Part shown: positions 50,616-64,000 of the stretch, in pieces | Layout: each line of letters begins with the position of its first letter | Position numbering within the stretch: the stretch's first letter is position 1 | NCBI GenBank assembly: GCA_950097015.1 | Contig: CATNEN010000037.1 | Location: 1,488,001 to 1,552,000 of the forward strand | Source: Macrostomum hystrix | Taxonomy: Eukaryota > Animalia > Platyhelminthes | Direction of reading: 5' to 3' | Length of the DNA: 64,000 nucleotides | Notes under the pieces: generated by a model | Databases searched by the model: none | The model's input: only the letters and a program-made list of their open reading frames with translations | Told to the model about the DNA's origin: nothing | Position numbers and translations under genes: made by a program

Positions 50616-51825
50616 TAATATAAACTCTAAAGATAGCTTTAGGACAAGGTCATGTATATCTATATTTACATAACCTAAACTAAACTCAGATTTACCCCGA
50701 TATAAAATTAAGAATGATATAAAATATAAAAATGAATAGGCAACTCCAAGATTCATTTCATTTTCATCAGATGATTGTACTAGCCAACTAGCATAGGCTA
50801 TCTTTTTAAGTAGACATTCATTAAAATTCTTAAATAGCTAATCTAATAATTTATAATTCAGTTGTTGTTTATTCATTTCCTATTATAATAAATTGTTTAA
50901 ATTGAGCATAGCTAATATTAATAAAACTCTAACTATAATCTATAAATGACTTTAAAACCTTTTATAATTATTTAATTATATTATAGATAAATTGTTCATA
51001 CACGCCTATATTATATACCATGGGTTTTGAAATTTACTGTTATATTCTTTCAGATCAGTTATTGATCAAATTAGGGTTAGGCCAAGACCAAAGGACAGGG
51101 CATCTGTAGAATATGTATGTATTTATAGCTATTTTACTGCATAACTAACTACATACAATTGCAGCAAGCCGAAAAGCAAACAACTTTATCACTTTCATTT
51201 TTAAAGTTCAATAGTAAAAGACACATGAAGATTAGTAAAAATTGAGGATATGGTATAGGCAATTCTTTTTTGTTTTTAATTGCGTTTATACTTTTTAAGT
51301 TTATATATATGTTTTCTCAGAACAAACGCGTGATCGCAAAATTAACTCGGCAAACAATTAATTTATGCAATAAATAAAATAAAAATAAAATAAAATAATA
51401 ATAAACGTTAATTGACTTGCATGTGCATTTGGCTGGGTGAATAAACAAACGCGAAATAAGTAACACGAAATAAGAAGAAGAAATAATGTATTACCGTGAT
51501 CAAAGTAGTCAGGCTATTAGTATATAAAAAAAGTTTTTTTACCTTAAGGCACTTTCGAATTTTTTTGAAAAAGGCAGCGACTAAATTATGAAGTAAAGAA
51601 ATCGTGTTAAGTCTTTTTTTTGCATCAAGATTTTACTTTTTTGAATGGTCTTTTATGAGTTTTTAATTAGCTCGTATCAACTCCATATTGTTCTTTATAA
51701 AAAATATATGCAACTTATGCGTTCGTTCATATCCTTCAGTAAAAAGTACAAGCATTCAAATTGTAGCGTGAAAACTTTCCCTTTCTTTTCTAATAAGTTA
51801 CAGTTTTCCCTGTCGCCCACAATAT

Positions 51826-52164
51826 TTACAGCTCCTCTCTGACGTTTATAATATACAATTCGCCCTTATTAGCCTTGCTGCGCACAGTCTCACAGTGAAC
51901 CTCCCAGTCCAGTTCGTTATGAAATCGTCTCGGGCAGTGCATCATGGTGCAAGAGTCCAGGCTGCCACCATCGATTGTGCACAGGCAGCTGTTACAACCA
52001 TCCGGTGAGAAATGATATCCCCCGTGCTTTTTGTCCTCGCAGAACTCGAACGCGCTGAAACAGGATCCTCGGGTATCGTTGGCCAGCACTTGCTGAGGTA
52101 AAAAATTCACAATGGCGATTGAAAGCTGCAGCACGATTAGCCAGCACGTATATCGATGTGACAT
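51826..52164 (-). CDS. Small secretory-pathway Cys-rich protein with a pacifastin-like motif, copy 1
   Basis: Signal-like N-terminus, 'C...DGCNSCLC..DGG...SCTMMHC', C-terminus REEL. The ORF is intact in both duplicate copies. Confidence 0.65.
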   Translation of the reverse strand: MSHRYTCWLIVLQLSIAIVNFLPQQVLANDTRGSCFSAFEFCEDKKHGGYHFSPDGCNSCLCTIDGGSLDSCTMMHCPRRFHNELDWEVHCETVRSKANKGELYIINVREEL

Positions 52165-53180
52165 CTTTGAAGAATTTACGTTTAGCTTGCTGGATTAGAG
52201 ATTTGAATGTCAGCTACTGAAGAGCTAGACCTTCTATCGGTATCAATAAAAGTAATTTATATACTCAGTTCTAATAGTATTCCATGTGGTGTAACACTGA
52301 TAGTGGAACGTGCCTTATCCACAAATTGTTAGACACCAAAATGTGTTCGGATTGTAATTCTCACAATTGCTTTTCCATGTGCACGCGCGAGCCTGGTAGA
52401 ACCTTGACTGTGCTTTTCTGGATACAGCTGACTTATCAAATAATAGCTATAGGAGCGGCTTCTAAAACAAAAATATCACAGATCTATAGTCGCTTCACTG
52501 CAGTCACGTAGATTAGTAGTCTTGAAAAAGATACAGGGTAAATGTTAAAAACAGCATTTTCGAATGGCTTATAAGCGTTCGAGAATGGTACGAGAATCGA
52601 GTATATTCTTGCTAATATATTCTGATCGCCTGTTTGTTTTTTAATAAAACCTCAATTAACTTTTCGGTGACAGTGCAGGAATGAAATTTCTGAAATTTGA
52701 CTGGACTTTTTTTACTCGTTTTTACTACAAAAATACTCGTCTATTTAGCGTGCAAGAATCTCAAATAGCGTCCGCTAAATCGTACAGGAATGTTGTGCAG
52801 TACAGTCTGCGGTAAAACCTCACTCAAAATTTTATAATGCTCAGCGTTCAAGAATGAAACGCACTCTTACTTGATTTAGTGTGCGGGATTGCTTTAGCGT
52901 GCGGGAATTTTAGCGACGACTTTGTCGTCATGCTCTGAGCTCTGAAATGGTCAGAGCTCGTGCAGAGCTTCGCGCAACTCGTGTTTTTGCGATTCTACTC
53001 GTCCCGAACTCGTGCAGGAATGTACCAATCAATATTGCTTAAATCATCTAATACTCAAAATAAGTTATCACAGTTTTCGTTAGGAACAAAATAATAAGTA
53101 AGTGTTCGCACCGGAAAATTAGATTTGTAAAGCTCCAATGCTAAATGCCGGGAGAGCTAGCTGCTGACGACAACAAGCTG

Positions 53181-53967
53181 CTACAGTCGCATTGTGCACT
53201 GAACGAATTCGTCATAGGTAAAATAGCAGGTGCCAGTCTCTTCGTCATTGTGCTGCGCCCGGTCACGCGCTCGAAAAGTCTCCGTAAAATAGCGCAGGCG
53301 CACGGACAGCGCGACAAAGTCGTCGAATGCCAGCAGAGAGCGGCCATCGTTCATGGCTCTTGCGTGACGCTTGAGTAGCGTGGAAATCGCCTGAGGCGAC
53401 AGGATGTAGCGAAATCTTTGCGTGATGAGGTTTTGCAGCTCGTGGGCTTCAATGTATCCACTCCGGTTAAGGTCGAATTCCTGGAATGTGCTGTGCCAGT
53501 ACACAAGGCAGGTCAGAAGCTCGCGAAACTCGTCGTACTGCATGATACCATCTTGCGACCGGTCAAGCATGGCCAGCATGATTCTGCAGAGCTCCATAGA
53601 CCAGGTGACACCGTAGTAGCTGCGAATGTTTGGGTGCTCGTTCAGGATGCGGCAGAGCTCGTGAGCCTGGATACCGCCCAGTGTTGGCGAGGCGTAGCTG
53701 TTGAACATTCCTGCGAACTCGTTCTCGTTTTGGAACTGAAAACTCTGAAAAAATAGCGTAGAGAAACACAGGTTAGGCAAGCTAATTTAGGTTTACATTT
53801 AAACGCAATCGAATGAAACTCTCGCTCACCTGCCATGGGTTCACATGCTCGTAGACATTCTGCGCCATATTCTCTCCATAGCTACCGTAGAACTGGCTGT
53901 TCTGATGACTCGTCATCTGCTGCCTGTAGAACTGTTTACCCAGCTGCTGTGCTACGAAGCGCCTCAT
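53181..53967 (-). CDS. Penta-EF-hand protein (sorcin/grancalcin-like), copy 1; exons 53830-53967 and 53181-53735 (or 53744)
   Basis: 'IQAHELCRIL', 'ELCRIMLAMLDRSQDGIMQYDEFRELL', 'FQEFDLNRSGYIEAHEL', 'LAFDDFVALSVRLRYFTETFRARD', 'FTYDEFVQCTM'; phase-0 intron gtgagc..cag. Confidence 0.88.
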
Positions 53968-54231
53968 GCTGATCGGATGATGGAATGATCTGATCCTTAA
54001 CACAGAAGACAACTTATCCATAAGTGAAACAAAGAAATGATACTTAACCCAGTTGGGCCAGCAGCCAACGCTTTAAATAAAGGCTTGTTCAACTGTTCAG
54101 TCCATGAACTGGAGAGGCCGCCACCCAAAATTTCCCTGCAAAATGTTATTTCAGCTCTTCAAGAAACTAACCTTGTATACTTGTAATCCGCGTCAGTTGA
54201 GTCTGTTGGTGCTTCAGAACTTAATGGTAGC

Positions 54232-56227
54232 TTAATACCAGGCTTTTAAGCGCGTAGCGCACTCGTGCCGCGTCATTTCCGCACGCAAAAGCCTGGTATA
54301 AGGCACATTGTCACATTCTTTCTCTTATTATTTCTCGTTGTGTAATTTTGTGATTATCAAACGCCAACTTTTCAACATCTACCATAGACTATGGTGGAAC
54401 TGCGAGTTTATTTTTCATATCAACGAGAAATCAGCTTCAATGGTTAAGCAATGAACAGTTTACAGTTTTTAGTTGTTTATAGTTGCAATTCTCAATGACG
54501 CAGATGTCTCTAACCATTCAAGTTGAAAGTGCAGCCAGAGAAATGACAATCCGTGAAGATAGTTGAGACGTTCTGCCTACTAAGTGTAATGTTCTGGTTA
54601 CTCACGTCCATCGTGCTTGACGATCCAGCGTTAGATGGCTGATCAGTCCTAACCAATTCTGTGTTCGTACGAGAATCACTTGATTGCAAAGCTTCCCCCA
54701 CAGTCGTAGCCATGTCTCGCAGCGTGTGGTCACGTTTCCTCGATAGATACCGCCGAACTGTCGACTCAGATTGATGTCCCGTGATATTCATGATGTCGGA
54801 CAGAGTATAGCCAGCTTCGTGTAGATCAGCCGTCCTAGTTACTCGAATGCAATGGTTCGTATACTTTTTGCTGAGCTCACACAGGGTGCTTAATCGAGAT
54901 CGTGCTGAACGATCCTAACCAATTGATTCCACGAACCTGCTTAGTTGAAAACTGCAGCTGTCCTTCTTTATTTGCCATCGGTCTTGGAAAAAACGAATTG
55001 TCCTTGGTTTCGTTGGGCAGGACTTGAAGGTAGGTCTTAATGAGTTCATACTGACCGCCATAGATTCTCGCTTGCTTTGGGTTGAAACCTTTGGCCTTGA
55101 CTGGATTGGCACTCTGGTTCTTGGTTCTGAGGTTAGGTAGCTCGTAATACTTCTTGCCGTCGCCGTCTTCTTTTTCTACGAGTATGTCTCTCTGACGAAG
55201 GTGTTGGAGGTGCTCTTGACCGCGCTCTCCCAAGACATACAATAAAGTGTAAATCACTTCATCCTGTAGTCGTTCTCCAGTCGAGCGATCAAAGTAACTG
55301 GACAACTTGGTTAGATCGGCGCGCTCTATCGGTTCGTAACGCTTCACGCTCCCGCCTTTAGAATGAAAATCCCGCACCTTAACTCGAAGCATGCGATTGG
55401 CAGTATAGCAAAGTTAGGATCATCGACGATGTTGAGTTCACGCTTGATAATGAAGTGAAAAAATCGCTGGATGCCGGCCCGAATGCAGACCAAGCTAGAT
55501 GGCGAGTACGACTCTCCATTCGGTTTAGAAAGCCGAAAGTAGTAGAACCGCAGGTGCTCGTTGAGGCTACTGGGCTCCATTGTTTTGAGACTTTCAACAG
55601 GATGACCCAAGTCACTCATGTAGCTGGCAAACGCTTTGCCATAAAGGAACATTTGCTCCTTGGTCGATCTTGGTAGAGAATCCACCTCGGCCTTGTCCAT
55701 GACATCAGTAGCAACAGAAGCTCCATCCTCTTCACATTCCGGCAGATCGACACCAAGCAGTTCATCGTCAGATCGTGAATGATCGGTAATGAAGTTAATA
55801 AAGTCCTCCAGCTGATTGTCATCTCGGTGATTGTCACTGCTCAGCTCCGCAATGAATGAGTATTCGCTGGATGAAACGCCATCGAGACTATCAACCGGCA
55901 GATGAGACCAATTGATAAGATGCGTAGCGGTCATGTTTAAGGCAGGCAAGCGAAGACGGCTTAAAATGAAAAACTGAGAAGTCTTCGCTGTAACTTCGAA
56001 CATTTAAGACCAAAGTTTCTGACGAATTACCATAGACGGTATCTAAATTTAGTCATGCATTATCAACCGTTTGATAATGAAAGATTATTAAACGCCTATT
56101 TTGTGTAGAAATCATGAGACAATAATATTGTGTCTATGGTTTTAGGCTTTGATAATGCTCAAATGACACTCGTGGCTTCGCCACTCGTTTATTTGAGCAT
56201 TATCAAAGCCTAAAACCATAGACACAA
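54232..56227 (-). mobile_element. Crypton-like tyrosine-recombinase DNA transposon A (CDS ~54510-55934, two frameshifts)
   Basis: Joined frames give 'LRFYYFRLSKPNGESYSPSSLVCIRAGIQRF...LGERGQEHL...KYTNHCIRVT...IMNITGHQSESTVRRY', with catalytic R, HxxR, H and Y intact. Hairpins at both sides, no TIR/TSD pair. The 5' boundary is uncertain and may extend to ~56860. Confidence 0.8.
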
Positions 56228-56697
56228 CTAACCATTATTTTCTCGCCTTTAGTTTCTCGCCATAGACATAATAAAATTCATTCGCCTATGTCTCCTATCG
56301 GTTCCTGCAGTTTGAAATGGCGTGCGGTAATGCCACCGCCATTACTGCACGCTTTTTGGACTTCTCTTAAGTCCAACGCATACGAAATCACCATAGACAT
56401 TTGTCATTACCGCAGGCTAAAAAGTATCATACCGCAGCTAGGCGAGATGATAATGGAACTTTACCGGTTGGGTGCCGAGCAAGTTAATGGCGGTCGATCG
56501 AGGCGCGTAGCGCCGAGATCGTAATCGCCATTAACTGCGAGGCAGCCAACCGGTAAAAGCATTATAAGGCTTCAGGCCATAGACAAATCAACTCCCCCTA
56601 TAACGCCGTTGCTTGTCGACCGACAGCCGCCAGATAGCGTTATAGGGGGAGTTGATTTGTCTATGGCCTGAAGCCTTATAATGCTTTTACCGGTTGG
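56128..56697. other. Cluster of long DNA hairpins next to Crypton A
   Basis: Perfect 37-bp arms (56128-56164 / 56191-56227), an imperfect stem 56460-56557, and perfect 61-bp arms (56546-56606 / 56637-56697). Confidence 0.92.
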
Positions 56698-57458
56698 TAA
56701 AATACTTTAATTGATAATTGAAAAGAAACAAATATAAGCGTCCAAATTTTGTAAGCTTCTGGCTCATGGCGGATTGGCGCAGTTTGTGCCATAGACATGC
56801 CATTATCGCTGAGTGATCGTTTATACCATAATACGTTGCTGAAGCCTTATAATGATGCTTAAATGATGATGATCAAATCGCTTAATATTTATTTATATAT
56901 TTCACTCAGATATCAGCTGCCCCATTCAGGAAGTCGCCTAAGGTTTATTGACTAAACGGTGAAGGGCGGTCAATATCTAGCTCGAACTGGTTTGAATAAT
57001 TCATCTCTACATTTGCTATATTTGCTGAGCACATGTATTGCTTGCCCATGGAAATGGATCTCGTATTGATCACGATTGAGGCACGATTCTTTTGAGTCTA
57101 AACTTCTAAAATAACTGCAAATAAAAATGCCCATTCCTTATTCTTCCACTTCCAACACTTCCAACAACCACAGCAAGAGCGAGATGCGCTTCTGAATCAA
57201 ATGTAATGCAGAGGTCCATTTTAGGAAATAAGCTTTCAATGACTCAATAAAACTTGTTTTGTCCTGCAGTGTCAATCAAATAAGATTTATTAAACTTTTT
57301 TCCGGATGACCACATAAAAACTAAGAATTCTGCTGAGATTGCATGCAGCATGCAGTGTGATGTTAAAATCTAATAATTTATAATTCAGTTGTTGTTTATT
57401 CATTTCCTATTATAAGAAATTGTTTAAATTGAGCATAGCTAATATTAATAAAACTCTA

Positions 57459-57491
57459 TCTATATATATAAATGTGAAAACTCTGTCTGTC

Positions 57492-57526
<35 letters not shown>

Positions 57527-59399
57527 AACCTTTTGTCTTTATAGACGCCGAAACCGCTCAACCAAATCGCACCAAACTTTGCACATACCTAAAACCACCT
57601 ACGCTGAGTGCAATAGGCTACTCAAATTCCCGAAAAATCATTTCCTTCCTGCTCAAAAGTGCAAAAAACTGCTCAAAAATCGTCAAAAAATCACTCAATT
57701 CGACATATCGTCGCCCCACTTTCTCAGATTTTCTCCAAATTTGATCCACTTACACTTTACATGTTTTCCAACAATGCTGTCAATTTTGAACATCTCTACT
57801 CAATCCAGAGCAAAGCTGCATCATCTCAAAGTGAGTCACTTTTTGTTTTCCGAGGACAGCCACCCCAACTCCCCTCCGCCACTCTGCGGGCCAAATTTTA
57901 TTACAGCCACCCCCTCCCTTCCCCGGGCGCCGAAGCCCCAGACTGTACATTGTATTTCAAGCCGTGAATGTACACAGCCCAAACCCCAAGACTGTCTACT
58001 GGCCCCCAAGCAGCACTGAGACTGAGTGCGGTGAGTGCGGTGGCGTCCCAGTGCGCAGGGCTCTCCGGTCGATATTTCTCTCCAGCCAGCCTGGGATAGA
58101 AGAAAGAGAGAGGCTGGCGTTGACTGGCTGTCAGAGAGGGCAATTCTGTGTCCTAGAAATGATGCCGCCAACGAAATTAACTACCAACTCCTTCAGGAGT
58201 TGCCAGGTGCAGTTTTCACCTACAAGTCAATTGATACAACGTTGACTGATGACACCGCTGTGGAGTATCCTGTTGAGTTTCTGAACTCTCTAGATCCTCC
58301 TGGAACTCCATCGCACAACTTGCAGCTGAAAGTTGGGGCACCAATTATGCTCCTCCGCAACCTGAATGCGCCAAGGCTGTGTAACGGCACCAGACTGATA
58401 GTCAGGCGGCTCTTCCCACACGTGATTGAGGCCACGATAATGACTGGATCTGGCAGAGGAGAGTCTGTGTTCGTTCCCCGGATTCCAATTATCCCCACGG
58501 ACCTGCCATTTCAGTTCAAGCGACTGCAGTTCCCTGTGAGAGTGTGCTTTGCGATGACTATTAACAAGGCTCAGGGACAGTCGCTGAAGGTAGCTGGCAT
58601 CAACCTGGAGACTCCTTGCTTCTCGCATGGGCAGCTTTATGTCGCCTGCTCCCGTGTTGGAACTCCAGCTGGCCTATTCATTTTCGCACCAAGGGGAAGA
58701 ACGAAGAATGTGGTGTATCCCCAGGCCTTGAGGTGACTCGCAAGCAATTAATAGAAAAGTAGTCACGAATTGACCTTGACCTGTCTAACTCTGAACTCTG
58801 AAACAGTTTAATTTTGTTTCTTTGACATTGTTATTGTTATGCCATGGCTATTTTCCTTATGTATACGCGTGTACATGCATACTGTATACAGAGGCAGATT
58901 TAGGGGGGGGGGCGGGGGGGCAGTCGCCCCCATAAATTTTAATCATGGGAATAAGATGCCCCCACCAGGGGTGCCAGTCGCAGCACTGGCGCCCCTTTTC
59001 GGCCGCTGGCGCCCCTTTTTCAGCCGCTGGCTCCCGTTTTTCAGCCGCTGGCGCCCTTTCTTGGCTCCTGGCGCCCTTTTTCGGCCGCTGGCACCCCCTC
59101 TGTGATTCTCATGGCGCTCCCCTGACAGACCGCCCCAAAACAAAATTCCTGGATCTGCCACTGACTGTATAGAGGAGTGGCTAAGAGACATGTTTCTAAA
59201 GAAGTAATCAAGAGGGGGCTGTTTGGACAAACTTTTCACATATTTTTTACTTAAAACGCCCTTAAACAAACTCTTCACTTTTCATTAATGCAGTAAATAA
59301 ATAAATGGTGACCTTCACTATAAGTTAATACAGAGACGTGAATTGCTTACTGCTTTGCTTTAAATTTCTGCCCCAAAAGCAACGGGCAAAAAAAGCTAG
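57459..59399 (+). mobile_element. Non-autonomous Helitron retaining the C-terminal part of the PIF1-like helicase (58035-58736)
   Basis: 5' TC ('tctatatatataaa...ctgtctgtctg'), 3' GCCC..GGGC hairpin then CTAG, inserted between A and T with no TSD, absent from copy 1. ORF contains 'RAILCPRN', 'LKVGAPIMLLRNL...LCNGTRL', 'RLQFPVRVCFAMTINKAQGQSL', 'FSHGQLYVACSRV'. Confidence 0.93.
58889..59163. mobile_element. hAT-type MITE nested in the Helitron
   Basis: Imperfect TIR cagaggcagatttagg / cctggatctgccactg; perfect 8-bp TSD actgtata (58881-58888 and 59164-59171). Confidence 0.88.
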
Positions 59400-60373
59400 T
59401 AACTCTATATAACTCTATATAACTCTATATAACTATAAATCTATAAATGACTTTAAAACCTTTTATAATAATTTAATTATAGATAAATTGTTCATACACG
59501 CCTATATTATATACCATGGGTTTTGAAATTTACTGTTATATTCTTTCAGATCAGTTATTGATCAAATTAGGGTTAGGCCAAGACCAAAGGACAGGGCATC
59601 TGTAGAATATGTATGTATTTATAGCTATTTTACTGCATAACTAACTACATACAATTGCAACAAGCCGAAAAGCAAACAACTTTATCACTTTCATTTTTAA
59701 AGTTCAATAGTAAAAGACACATGAAGATTAGTAAAAATGGAGGATATGGTATAGGCAATTCTTTTGTTTTTTTTTAATTTGTTTTTAATTGCGTTTATAC
59801 TTTTTAAGTAATTATAAGAAAAGTATCGGCACTACTGTCTAGAAAATTATATTGATGTTTTCTCAGAACAAACGCGTGATCGCAAAATTAACTCGGCAAA
59901 CAATTAATTTATGCAATAAATAAAATAAAAATAATAAAATAATAATAGGCCTAAACGTTATTGACTTACATGTGCATTTGGCTGGGTGAATAAACAAACG
60001 CGAAATAAGTAATACGAAATAAGAAGAAGAAATAATGTATTACCGTGATCTAAGTAGTCAGGCAATTAGTATATAAAAAAGTTTTTTTACCTTAAGGCAC
60101 TTTCGAATATTTTTGAAAAAGGCAGCGACTAAATTATGAAGTAAAGAAATCGTGTTAAGTCTTTTGTTTGCATCAAGATTTTACTTTTTTGAATGGTCTT
60201 TTATGAGTATTTAATTAGCTCGTATCAACTCCATATTGTTCTTTATAAAAAATATATGCAACTTATGCGTTCGTTCATATCCTTCAGTAAAAAGTACAAG
60301 CATTCAAATTGTAGCGTGAAAACTTTCCCTTTCTTTTCTAATAAGTTACAGTTTTCCCTGTCGCCCACAATAT

Positions 60374-60712
60374 TTACAGCTCCTCTCTGACGTTTATAAT
60401 ATACAATTCGCCCTTATTAGCCTTGCTGCGCACAGTCTCACAGTGAACCTCCCAGTCCAGTTCGTTATGAAATCGTCTCGGGCAGTGCATCATGGTGCAA
60501 GAGTCCAGGCTGCCACCATCGATTGTGCACAGGCAGCTGTTACAACCATCCGGTGAGAAATGATATCCCCCGTGCTTTTTGTCCTCGCAGAACTCGAACG
60601 CGCTGAAACAGGATCCTCGGGTATCGTTGGCCAGCACTTGCTGAGGTAAAAATATCACAATGGCGATTGAAAGCTGCAGCACGATTAGCCAGCACGTATA
60701 TCGATGTGACAT
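60374..60712 (-). CDS. Small Cys-rich pacifastin-like protein, copy 2
   Basis: Identical to copy 1 except one N>I change in the signal region. Confidence 0.65.
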   Translation of the reverse strand: MSHRYTCWLIVLQLSIAIVIFLPQQVLANDTRGSCFSAFEFCEDKKHGGYHFSPDGCNSCLCTIDGGSLDSCTMMHCPRRFHNELDWEVHCETVRSKANKGELYIINVREEL

Positions 60713-61694
60713 CTTTGAAGAATTTACGTTTAGCTTGCTGGATTAGAGATTTGAATGTCAGCTACTGAAGAGCTAGACCTTCTATCGGTATCAATAAAAG
60801 TAATTTATATACTCAGTTCTAATAGTATTCCATGTGGTGTAACACTGATAGTGGAACGTGCCTTATCCACAAATTGTTAGACACCAAAATGTGTTCGGAT
60901 TGTAATTCTCACAATTGCTTTTCCATGTGCACGCGCGAGCCTGGTAGAACCTTGACTGTGCTTTTCTGGATACAGCTGACTTATCAAATAATAGCTATAG
61001 GAGCGGCTTCTAAAACAAAAATATCACAGATCTATAGTCGCTTCACTGCAGTCACGTAGATTAGTAGTCTTGAAAAAGATACAGGGTAAATGTCAAAAAC
61101 AGCATTTTCGAATGGCTTAGCGTTCGAGAATGGTATATTCTTGCTAATATATTCTGATCGCCTGTTTGTTTTTTAATAAAACCTCAATTAACTTTTCGGT
61201 GACAGTGCAGGAATGAAATTTCTGAAATTTGACTGGACTTTTTTACTCGTTTTTACTACAAAAAATACTCGTCTATTTAGCGTGCAAGAATCTCAAATAG
61301 CGTCCGCTAAATCGTACAGGAATGTTGTGCAGTACAGTCTGCGGTAAAACCTCACTCAAAATTTTATAATGCTCAGCGTTCAAGAATGAAACGCACTCTT
61401 ACTTGATTTAGTGTGCGGGAATTTTAGCGACGACTTTGTCGTCATGCTCTGAGCTCTGAAATTGTCAGAGCTCGTGCAGAGCTTCGCGCAACTCCTGTTT
61501 TTGCGATTCTACTCGTCCCGAACTCGTGCAGGAATGTACCAATCAATATTGCTTAAATCATCTAATACTCAAAATAAGTTATCACAGTTTTCGTTAGGAA
61601 CAAAATAATAAGTAAGTGTTCGCACCGGAAAATTAGATTTGTAAAGCTCCAATGCTAAATGCCGGGAGAGCTAGCTGCTGACGACAACAAGCTG

Positions 61695-62485
61695 CTACAG
61701 TCGCATTGTGCACTGAACGAATTCGTCATAGGTAAAATAGCAGGTGCCAGTCTCTTCGTCATTGTGCTGCGCCCGGTCACGCGCTCGAAAAGTCTCCGTA
61801 AAATAGCGCAGGCGCACGGACAGCGCGACAAAGTCGTCGAATGCCAGCAGAGAGCGGCCATCGTTCATGGCTCTTGCGTGACGCTTGAGTAGCGTGGAAA
61901 TCGCCTGAGGCGACAGGATGTAGCGAAATCTTTGCGTGATGAGGTTTTGCAGCTCGTGGGCTTCAATGTATCCACTCCGGTTAAGGTCGAATTCCTGGAA
62001 TGTGCTGTGCCAGTACACAAGGCAGGTCAGAAGCTCGCGAAACTCGTCGTACTGCATGATACCATCTTGCGACCGGTCAAGCATGGCCAGCATGATTCTG
62101 CAGAGCTCCATAGACCAGGTGACACCGTAGTAGCTGCGAATGTTTGGGTGCTCGTTCAGGATGCGGCAGAGCTCGTGAGCCTGGATACCGCCCAGTGTTG
62201 GCGAGGCGTAGCTGTTGAACATTCCTGCGAACTCGTTTTCGTTTTTGAACTGAAAACTCTGAAAAAATAGCGTAGAGAAACACAGGTTAGGCAAGCTAAT
62301 TTAGGTTTACATTTAAACGCAATCGAATGAAACTCTCGCTCACCTGCCATGGGTTCACATGCTCGTAGACATTCTGCGCCATATTCTCTCCATAGCTACC
62401 GTAGAACTGGCTGTTCTGATGACTCGTCATCTGCTGCCTGTAGAACTGTTTACCCAGCTAGCTGCTGTGCTACGAAGCGCCTCAT
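61695..62485 (-). pseudogene. Penta-EF-hand gene copy 2, exon 1 disrupted by a 4-bp duplication
   Basis: Exon 1 is 142 nt (62344-62485) versus 138 nt in copy 1. The extra AGCT gives ATG...CAG CTA GCT GGG TAA. Exon 2 is intact and a downstream in-frame ATG (MTSHQ) exists. Confidence 0.7.
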
Positions 62486-62771
62486 GCTGATCGGATGATG
62501 GAATGATCTGATCCTTAACACAGAAGACAACTTATCCATAAGGGAAACAAAGAAATGATACTTAACCCAGTTGGGCCAGCAGCCAACGCTTTAAATAAAG
62601 GCTTTGTTCAACTGTTCAGTCCATGAACTGGAGAGGCCGCCACCCAAAATTTCCCTGCAAAATGTTATTTCAGCTCTTCAAGAAACTAACCTTGTATACT
62701 TGTAATCCGCGTCAGTTGAGTCTTCAGAACTTAGAACTTTTGTTGGTGCTTCAGAACTACTTAATGGTAGA

Positions 62772-64000
62772 TTAAGTCTATGGTTTCAGGCTTGGCGAAG
62801 CCACTCGTGACTGTGATCATTATTTAATTCTGAAACCATAGACATAAGCGCATTATCACATAGACTAGCGTTTTCGGTTGATCATTATGTAACGCCATTA
62901 AGCCAAGCCATTAAGTAACGCTGCAGTGTCTTCGTGCCATAGATATTGGCAGTGAGCAGGGTCAAGGGAGCGCAGCTCCCTTGCGGGGGTGTGGGGGCAG
63001 AGCCCCGACTAATCGGACTATAGACAATTTTTAGAATACAGTTCTCTAAAAGAAAAGCTCGACCATAAAGTATGTTAGGAAGTTAAGAACTAGAAGCAAG
63101 AAGCGAGAGAAATCGAATTAAAAATGCCACTTATCAACTGGAAAAATCTACCGGTCGACAGTTAGATGGCGTCTCGTCTACTGAACTAGATTTTCTGAGT
63201 GAACTGAGCGCCATGAACCACAGTTCCGATGAAATTCTTGGAGATTTTATCGACTACCTGTCTAAAATCGAGACGGCTGATGAGGCCGCTGCCGTTTCTA
63301 GTGTCGAGCTTCCAGAACTATCTGATTTACCCAGTGCGATGGATGTTGTCGAACTGGAATCACTGACGAGCACTACACAAGAACACATGTTTCTGTATGG
63401 CAAAATGTTCGTGGAGTTTTTGAAGAAGCATTGTGCTGTGGATGTGAGCGAGATCAGTGACAGTCGCTTGGCCGAATTTCTAAGGTTCTTTTACTTCTGT
63501 CTAAAAAAATCTGACGGCAGTTGCTATTCGCCAGCTACGTTGGTCTGCATTCGTGCTGGAGTGCAGAGGTACTTGACTCTCGTGCTGAAGCGTCGAACAA
63601 ATATTATTTCTAGTGACGAGTTCGACACTGCCAACCGGATGCTGCGAGTAAAGGTGCGGCATTTTCATACTGATGGAGGCACTGTCAATCAGCACGAGCC
63701 AATAGAAGAAGGTGATTTACAGAAAATGCGTGCTTATTTTGACCGTTCTACAGCTGAACGGTTGCAAGATGAAGTACTATTTACGCTGCTGTATGTCCTG
63801 CATGGGCGAGAGAGGTCAAGAACACCTGTCAAGTCTAAAGCAAGTTGGCACGCTCCAAGAAGAAGTCGACGCTGATGGGAATCCATATCTTGCGTTGCCA
63901 CCGTTAAAGACAAAAAACCAGAGTAGCGATCCAACAAAATGCTAAGGAAATCAGCGCAAACAGAGTCGGATCTACGGCGCTCAGCGGGAGTTGATCCTGC
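62772..64000 (+). mobile_element. Crypton-like tyrosine-recombinase element B (degenerate, runs off the window; ATG at 63124)
   Basis: Clearly homologous to element A ('LINWKNLPVDS.DGVSS', 'LRFFYFCLKKSDGSCYSPATLVCIRAGVQRY', 'ANRMLRVKVRHF', 'ERLQDEVLFTLLYVL.GERGQEHL', 'KQSRIYG'). It has a -1 frameshift near 63162, a 4-nt insertion near 63800 and an in-frame TAA near 63943, plus a 14-bp-arm terminal hairpin. Confidence 0.8.

Follow-up and report, generated by a model that had tools for sequence, protein, structure and literature searches.

Nested and head-to-tail CryptonA-type elements with an AATG core at one site of a duplicated segment in Macrostomum hystrix

The window analyzed here is a stretch of 64,000 nucleotides of DNA from the flatworm Macrostomum hystrix (G000:C37:1488001-1552000), taken from a 220-Mb assembly. 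Toward its end lies a tandemly duplicated segment in which a single chromosomal position is filled, with different elements in the two copies, by CryptonA-type elements that share an AATG core and form a well-preserved cluster. Genome searches identified four repeat families in this region, namely A and B, which encode tyrosine recombinases, C, and a miniature inverted-repeat transposable element (MITE). Positions above 64000 are extended window coordinates beyond the window end. The features of the locus, followed by the four families, are:

50840-54222, no strand: left flank of duplicate copy 1, with sorcin-like EF-hand and pacifastin-like host open reading frames (ORFs; Pfam), 97.7% identical to 59847-62723.
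54223-54309, plus strand: 5' part of C, delimited by comparison with the uninterrupted C copies L032, L033 and L036; AATG at 54223-26, an 8-nt leader with TTAA at 54232-35, palindrome arms at 54235-47 and 54287-99, a trailer, and an inner CATT at 54306-09.
54310-56236, minus strand: A, autonomous Crypton, 1.93 kb, inserted into C at its CATT; 3' end ...GAATGTGAC at 54310, 5' end AATGGTTAG at 56236-56228, palindrome at 56128-56227.
54510-56003, minus strand: remnant of the A ORF, with two frameshifts.
56237-56455, plus strand: 3' part of C, with terminus ...GGCGAGATGATAATG.
56452-56854, plus strand: MITE, 403 bp and non-autonomous, head-to-tail with C, the AATG at 56452-55 being common to both; hairpin at 56460-56557; inner inverted repeat CATTATAAGGCTTCAG at 56560-75, matching the 3' terminus at 56839-54.
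56546-56697: perfect 61-bp inner palindrome of the MITE.
56855-57366, no strand: right flank of duplicate copy 1, ending at the unit junction between 57366 and 57367.
57367-62762, no strand: left flank of duplicate copy 2, interrupted by a Helitron-like fragment at about 57475-59429.
62763-64000, continuing to window-equivalent 64697 (G000:C37:1552697), plus strand: B, an autonomous-type Crypton; AATG at 62763-66, leader with TTAA at 62772-75, palindrome arms at 62772-89 and 62830-47, inner inverted repeat CATTATCACATAGAC... at 62851-74; ORF start at 63124, with three frameshifts.
Family A (window minus strand, about 54310-56236): 1.93 kb, about 8 copies at 97-100%.
Family B (plus strand, 62763 to 64697): 1.93 kb, at least 12 copies at 88-97%.
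MITE family (56452-56854): 403 bp, at least 40 copies.
Family C (54223-54309 plus 56237-56455): about 300 bp, at least 7 copies.

That the nearly identical flanks are two copies of one segment had been noticed in an earlier reading made from the letters alone (the sequence-only reading), and the alignments bear this out. Past the elements the duplication resumes, with 56871-57366 matching 64733-65228 at 99.6% identity, and the two units span 50840-57366 and 57367-65228; the duplication is young, ~3.9-kb and tandem. The junction between the units (..gatgttaa-AATCTAAT..) has no element end within it, and its only match to the outer borders is a 2-bp microhomology, 'AA'. With ~500 bp of duplicated sequence continuing past the elements, and the junction located away from them, the duplication boundary was not set by the recombinase, and this proposal of the sequence-only reading falls. 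Older EF-hand paralogues (82% and 77%) follow just downstream, which indicates that the locus is a tandem gene array. The genome holds exactly two copies of each flank, and a search of the assembly recovered no third paralogue, haplotig or empty allele of the site; the older EF-hand units are too diverged for alignment at the insertion site. No orthologous site was retrievable in Macrostomum lignano, where the best match of the flanking EF-hand ORF is only 71% identical, and the exact product of the pacifastin-like ORF is not on record. In two other segmental duplications with family members (L015/L016 and L002/L003) both copies carry the same element, which is the usual outcome.

The A element contains a single ORF of 490 aa, which is intact in a copy elsewhere in the genome (L008:1232-2704, G000:C28, minus strand). 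In an alignment of 15 sequences the residues R260, K294, H382-x-x-R385, H408 and Y417 of this protein are invariant or near-invariant, and a profile alignment places its C-terminal catalytic stretch (NHCIRVT...TGH...RY, supplying the H-x-x-R, His and Tyr) onto XerA (5hxy). A itself matches the PF00589 profile at 24.5 bits, slightly below the cutoff, as are the matches to PF25561 (QRICH1) in both A and B; it has no other Pfam domain. PF00589 is recorded for many of its homologues, and those at 30-35% identity have PF12012 (DUF3504) and PF25561 on record. The best relatives of the A protein are 'Tyr recombinase domain-containing' proteins of M. lignano, which carry all three domains. No reverse transcriptase, RNase H or methyltransferase was found in A by Pfam across its single 490-aa ORF, unlike in DIRS, Ngaro and PAT elements. 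The catalytic residues, the domains of the homologues, the single ORF and the lack of a reverse transcriptase together make this a CryptonA-type element under the published definition (PMC3212892), and A, B, C and the MITE are all members of one such family of tyrosine-recombinase DNA transposons. The sequence-only reading had already recognized Crypton-type elements here and had described their two recombinases as diverged and oppositely oriented; A and B are indeed about 48% identical at the protein level, with their genes on opposite strands. Both genes in the window are dead, A having two frameshifts relative to L008 and B three relative to an intact M. lignano ORF. The B product is 94% identical to an M. 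lignano protein (P0002), and none of seven sampled B copies of the genome has an intact ORF.

At the DNA level B (window positions 62763-64000) and an intact copy from M. lignano (public assembly, L040, NIVC01002014.1:150654-157003) are 96-97% identical, while the neighboring host EF-hand ORF (53181-53780) reaches only the 71% protein identity given above; this could be explained by paralogy, by a closely related sister species or by horizontal movement of the Crypton. Most of the homologous recombinases lie on contigs of 1.4-2.5 kb (Logan, ENA, JGI), about one element long, and related families appear to be widespread in other sequenced samples, assembling as stand-alone repeats.

The boundaries of these elements can be read from copies at unrelated loci. 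In the window 'cttaatggtagcTTAA' ends at 54235 and 'cttaatggtagaTTAA' at 62775, each directly followed by a palindrome, as the sequence-only reading had described; when folded as single-stranded DNA, these two palindromes give z = -3.8 and -3.5, respectively, against shuffles, and together with two others nearby they range from -3.5 to -13.8. The 13 bases AATGGTAG(A/C)TTAA are found in six B copies elsewhere, in the M. lignano B and in four C copies, all with unrelated flanks, and this TTAA-containing leader is identical at 12 of 13 positions between families B and C. Judging from these copies, 'AATGGTAG(C/A)TTAA' and the hairpin after it belong to the elements and form their 5' end, and the true boundary is not TTAA: it is t-AATG, at 54223 and 62763. 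Outside the window, six B copies at different loci and the M. lignano copy start AATGGTAGATTAAGTCTATGG.. and end ..TAGTCTATATGATAAT(G) beside unrelated DNA; C copies start AATGGTAGCTTAATACCAGG.. and end in the terminus seen in the window; A starts AATGGTTAGTTGT.. and ends ..GAATGTGACAAT(G); the MITE starts AATGGAACTTTACC.. and ends ..CCTTATAATG. At unrelated loci all four families thus start with AATGG and end with ..AYAAT(G), and only AATG is common to the ends of all of them, its last base varying in some copies (AATG, AATA or AATT). TTAA is absent from the leaders of A (AATGGTTAGTTGT) and the MITE (AATGGAACTTTAC), which speaks against it as a specific target.

The nested A copy provides a filled and an empty version of one site. 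The uninterrupted C copies (L032, L033, L036) read ..GGCA-CATT-ATTTTCTCGCC.., with ATTTTCTC or ATTTTC after CATT, and the window C reads ..GGCA-CATT-(A, minus strand)-CATT-ATTTTCTCGCC.., with CATT at 54306-09 and again at 56233-36. As the empty C site has one CATT and the A-filled site has two, the AATG core is proven; by this comparison of copies, insertion leaves the 4-bp core on both sides, and the empty site has a single copy. The same comparison corrects the view that copy 1 enters the 3' end of A. The hairpin at 54235-54299 is part of the plus-strand element C, inside which A lies from 54310 on. We rejected this hairpin as a 3' terminal hairpin of A, given that in five other A copies unrelated DNA directly follows the 3' end ...GTGACAAT with no hairpin, and that elsewhere the hairpin is contiguous with the C body. 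The sequence-only reading had itself considered that the hairpins might belong to separate non-autonomous elements unlinked to the recombinase genes; this holds for copy 1, where the hairpin is that of C. Copy 2 enters the 5' end of B on the plus strand, as it had stated.

A common layout emerges, comprising AATG, a leader of 2-9 nt, a long palindrome, a trailer of 2-7 nt, an inner CATT, the body, and an inverted repeat ending in AATG. The outer AATG and the inner CATT flank the 5' palindrome at near-symmetrical distances in B, C, the MITE and another family, D (L010), and in A the inner position is TATT instead of CATT. The 5' palindromes measure 60-110 bp. From the inner CATT onward the sequence recurs, inverted, at the 3' terminus; the repeats between inner site and 3' terminus are 16-24 nt long, with 92% identity over 24 nt in B and 100% over 16 nt in the MITE. 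It was the inner CATT of C that the insertion of A used.

Several details of the hairpins deserve mention in their own right. The 30-nt loop between the perfect 61-bp arms of the MITE has the reverse-complement orientation in two copies, that of the window and L012, when set against 18 others; those copies are otherwise only 0.25-1% from the consensus. This is a flip-flop isomer, and the loop of the B 5' hairpin is likewise flipped between copies. The palindrome tips (54249-54259, about 62793-62801, about 56170-56182 and 56501-56511) bear GCGAAGC or GCGTAGC mini-hairpins together with a CACTCGTG/CACGAGTG box, which are conserved across otherwise different hairpins. One A copy (L009, G000:C38:5339800-5343800) has its 5' hairpin replaced, and an inverted half of the A 5' hairpin, ending ..ACAACTAACCATT, lies just past its 3' end, suggesting that an inversion or rearrangement took place between cores.

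The sites used by the family were analyzed from 19 independent MITE copies. In the upstream flank, position -3 is G or T in 15/19, position -2 is A in 13/19 and position -1 is T or C in 17/19. This K-A-Y preference before AATG imitates the elements' own 3' ends, and the downstream flank is unconstrained; the logo of flanks advocated in the sequence-only reading thus yields a loose upstream preference and no TTAA target. Head-to-tail joints with a common AATG occur between C and the MITE in the window, between B and A in a B-A-D-MITE array (L010), and in other arrays (L033, L034). The window contains the word CCATAGAC 15 times, as compared with an expectation of 1.6; ten of the 15 lie inside elements. 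The word is also found within 300 nt of 13/19 MITE copies. A strict test for a leader plus hairpin directly after the MITE 3' end gave 2/19, against 2/688 control AATG sites. Our count by eye of about 8 of 19 tandem MITE neighbors was an overcount and was dropped in favor of the strict test, and the clustering is better supported by the CCATAGAC enrichment than by that test. Taken together, the head-to-tail joints, the proximity of CCATAGAC and the strict test indicate that family DNA is a preferred landing place; as judged from where the copies lie, new ones prefer K-A-Y-AATG and sites in or beside resident family members. The CCATAGAC words at 53594 and 62108, in the duplicated EF-hand ORF region of both copies and about 630 bp from the insertion site, are probably there by chance.

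The two duplicate copies can now be compared at their common site, ctt-AATG-atg... In copy 1 the flank ..gaactt is followed by C (plus strand, from 54223), with A nested 87 bp in, then by the MITE, and the flank resumes as atgctt.. at 56855. In copy 2 the flank ..gaactactt is followed by B (62763 to 64697), and then by atgatgctt... As the first element is C in copy 1 and B in copy 2, both copies enter a plus-strand 5' end. Different family members thus lie at the same chromosomal position, and the sequence-only reading was correct in holding that they were not simply co-duplicated. Divergence offers a rough chronology: the flanks differ between the duplicates by about 0.65% substitutions (22 of about 3,400), and the distance from the family consensus is 0.17% for A, about 0.3% for the MITE (its flipped loop set aside), 1.65% for B and 1.76% for C. 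All other B copies are at most 97% identical to the one in the window.

We interpret this discordant occupancy as turnover, with a probability of roughly 0.6: the site would have been occupied before the duplication and would have undergone excision or replacement afterwards. Most simply, the ancestral occupant at AATG would be an array with B and C, present when the segment was duplicated. Precise recombinase-mediated excision would then have removed B from copy 1 and C from copy 2, and the MITE and A would have integrated into copy 1 later, beside the residents. The recombinase may bind the inverted repeats, the palindrome and the CCATAGAC words; the element would be excised as a circle, whose junction would recombine with an AATG target. 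Such circular excision and recombination with a target is reportedly the model that Goodwin proposed for Cryptons in 2003. The end-to-end circle junction is expected to read ..GTGACAATGGTTAG.., with ..GTGACAATGGTTAGTTG.. for A and ..CCTTATAATGGAACTTTACC.. for the MITE, and the empty single-copy site would read ..CTTAATGATGCTT... Turnover is favored because B and C look older than the duplication, the site is a poor match to K-A-Y, and the odds of a second hit are, by our own estimate, about 1e-4.

Several points weigh against turnover. The assembly holds neither an empty allele nor a third paralogue that would show the state before duplication, and cut-and-paste movement decouples divergence from time at the site. 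Turnover, like independent insertion, requires activity on B- and C-type ends after the duplication, and there is no intact B here. Small indels within about 40 nt of both junctions differ between the copies; these may be footprints or slippage, and the copy-2-specific bases just to the right of B matched none of the fetched elements and are not identifiable as a remnant. We infer the circular intermediate, and the roles of the palindrome and of CCATAGAC, from sequence patterns, and a 1.8-kb Logan contig with A (L039) did not show a circle junction and ends in ordinary flank.

It is possible, if unlikely, that the site was empty at the time of duplication and that C (followed by the MITE and A) and B each hit the same hot-spot AATG later. 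The family does select its targets, preferring K-A-Y upstream of the AATG core, and it reuses positions in arrays and nested copies; copy 1 alone took at least three integrations. Against this, the C-T-T before AATG at this site departs from the preference, neither a palindrome nor CCATAGAC adjoins the site in the flank, and, by our own estimate, ~a million or more AATG sites are available to ~a hundred family copies, from which the odds above derive. Furthermore, by divergence B and C look about five times older than the duplication, and B lacks a close sibling.

We consider it improbable, though worth weighing, that two haplotypes were placed in series by the assembly, such that the 'copies' are alleles and their occupants a structural polymorphism. 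The level of substitutions in the flanks combined with large transposon indels (the Helitron-like fragment; A, C and the MITE versus B) is of the kind found in heterozygous regions that an assembler can duplicate, and the presence of each flank exactly twice agrees with it. However, the older downstream paralogues point to a genuine tandem array, and the junction lies inside a 4.5-Mb contig with a clean 2-bp microhomology. Even if this were the true state of affairs, two alleles with different elements at one AATG would remain to be explained.

A TTAA-specific system that created the duplication boundary, as the sequence-only reading had it, is very hard to sustain: TTAA does precede both hairpins, but it travels with B and C to every locus, is found at no 3' end and is missing from the other two leaders, and the duplication continues past the elements. 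Of that reading, the nearly identical flanks, the hairpins, the Crypton identity and the discordant occupancy survive, and the TTAA target and the setting of the boundary do not.

A more speculative extension of the turnover scheme, which we regard as doubtful, is that the 5' module (AATG, leader, palindrome, trailer and CATT) acts as a folded or cruciform site comparable to the integron attC, with residents serving as landing pads and an AATG, once hit, becoming a persistent cassette-exchange locus. If this were true, the two duplicate copies would be two snapshots of exchange, in a eukaryotic counterpart to cassette arrays, with selfish Crypton recombinases as its driving force. An integron consists of a platform, with an integrase gene outside the cassettes, attI and a promoter, and of cassettes that carry attC. 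The family shares with attC an imperfect palindrome with a variable center and short conserved inverted motifs, as well as head-to-tail core joints; a tyrosine recombinase is common to both systems, and gain and loss of cassettes at a fixed site would give discordant occupancy as seen here. In contrast, there is no platform here (attI, Pc or external integrase), the recombinase genes lie inside mobile units at dozens of loci, the recombinase has no specific relation to IntI, and the resemblance of the 5' module to attC is in shape only.

Comparison with other mobile elements suggests ordinary Crypton behavior with unusually clear ends, not a new site-specific system. The elements share with Cryptons, specifically CryptonA, a single tyrosine-recombinase ORF with DUF3504/QRICH1-like sequence, of the sort typical for animal Cryptons and for domesticated genes derived from them, and no reverse transcriptase, a 4-bp direct repeat at both ends that matches a single target copy, and non-autonomous derivatives that outnumber the autonomous copies. 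Crypton termini carry direct repeats of 4-6 bp that form a crossover core, as opposed to a duplication from staggered cuts, and a core on both sides that is single when the site is empty is the classical Crypton signature; by its protein and by the logic of its core, the family is a Crypton. The elements differ from published animal Cryptons in their defined ends, with the AATG core, the 60-110 bp 5' palindrome, the inverted AATG/CATT and the inverted repeat, and in their frequent head-to-tail arrays. The pairing of the 3' terminus with the inner site departs from the lack of terminal inverted repeats given as a Crypton trait, which is descriptive and not a mechanistic requirement.

piggyBac elements duplicate TTAA at both ends and encode a DDE transposase. 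All that is shared with them is the letters TTAA beside an element-like end; here TTAA is internal and on one side only, other members lack it, the 3' ends read ..GATAATG-atg.. without TTAA, and the only gene is a tyrosine recombinase, with no DDE transposase. The single-strand transposons of the HUH class (IS200/IS605, Helitron) have an HUH/Y1 or Rep transposase, subterminal hairpins and a 4-5 nt target. No HUH domain was found in these elements, and the Pif1 2B fragment of the locus is separate, in the flank. A closer parallel is CryptonF-1_cRei of Chlamydomonas, where clean excisions and core-matched insertions were observed directly (PMC9977147). There too the terminus motif equals the target motif (CACCG versus CAYCG, as AATG here), clean excision leaves the target, and copies recombine with target-like sites. 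However, that element belongs to group F, carries a GCR1_C domain and has no reported hairpin module, and its activity was seen directly, whereas that of the Macrostomum family is deduced from copies.

Little is known about the termini of animal Cryptons or the rules by which they choose targets; in the reference survey (Kojima and Jurka 2011; PMC3212892) terminal repeats were not found in them at all. In the literature collection that was searched there was no description of Cryptons in Macrostomum, only a general review that names both, and a wider search (Cryptons, palindromes, tyrosine recombinases, circles) gave no obviously relevant title. The present family offers exact boundaries, an empty and a filled version of the 4-bp core, a conserved palindromic end module and abundant young non-autonomous copies. 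As at least one recombinase gene is intact, the circle, the core and the role of the hairpin are directly testable, and the discordant occupancy points indirectly to excision or replacement of elements in an animal genome.

The Helitron-like fragment at 57475-59429 is present in the flank of duplicate copy 2 only. An ORF that matches the Pif1 2B domain at 2e-19 lies within it (58035-58736), with a (TG)n run before and G-rich repeats after.

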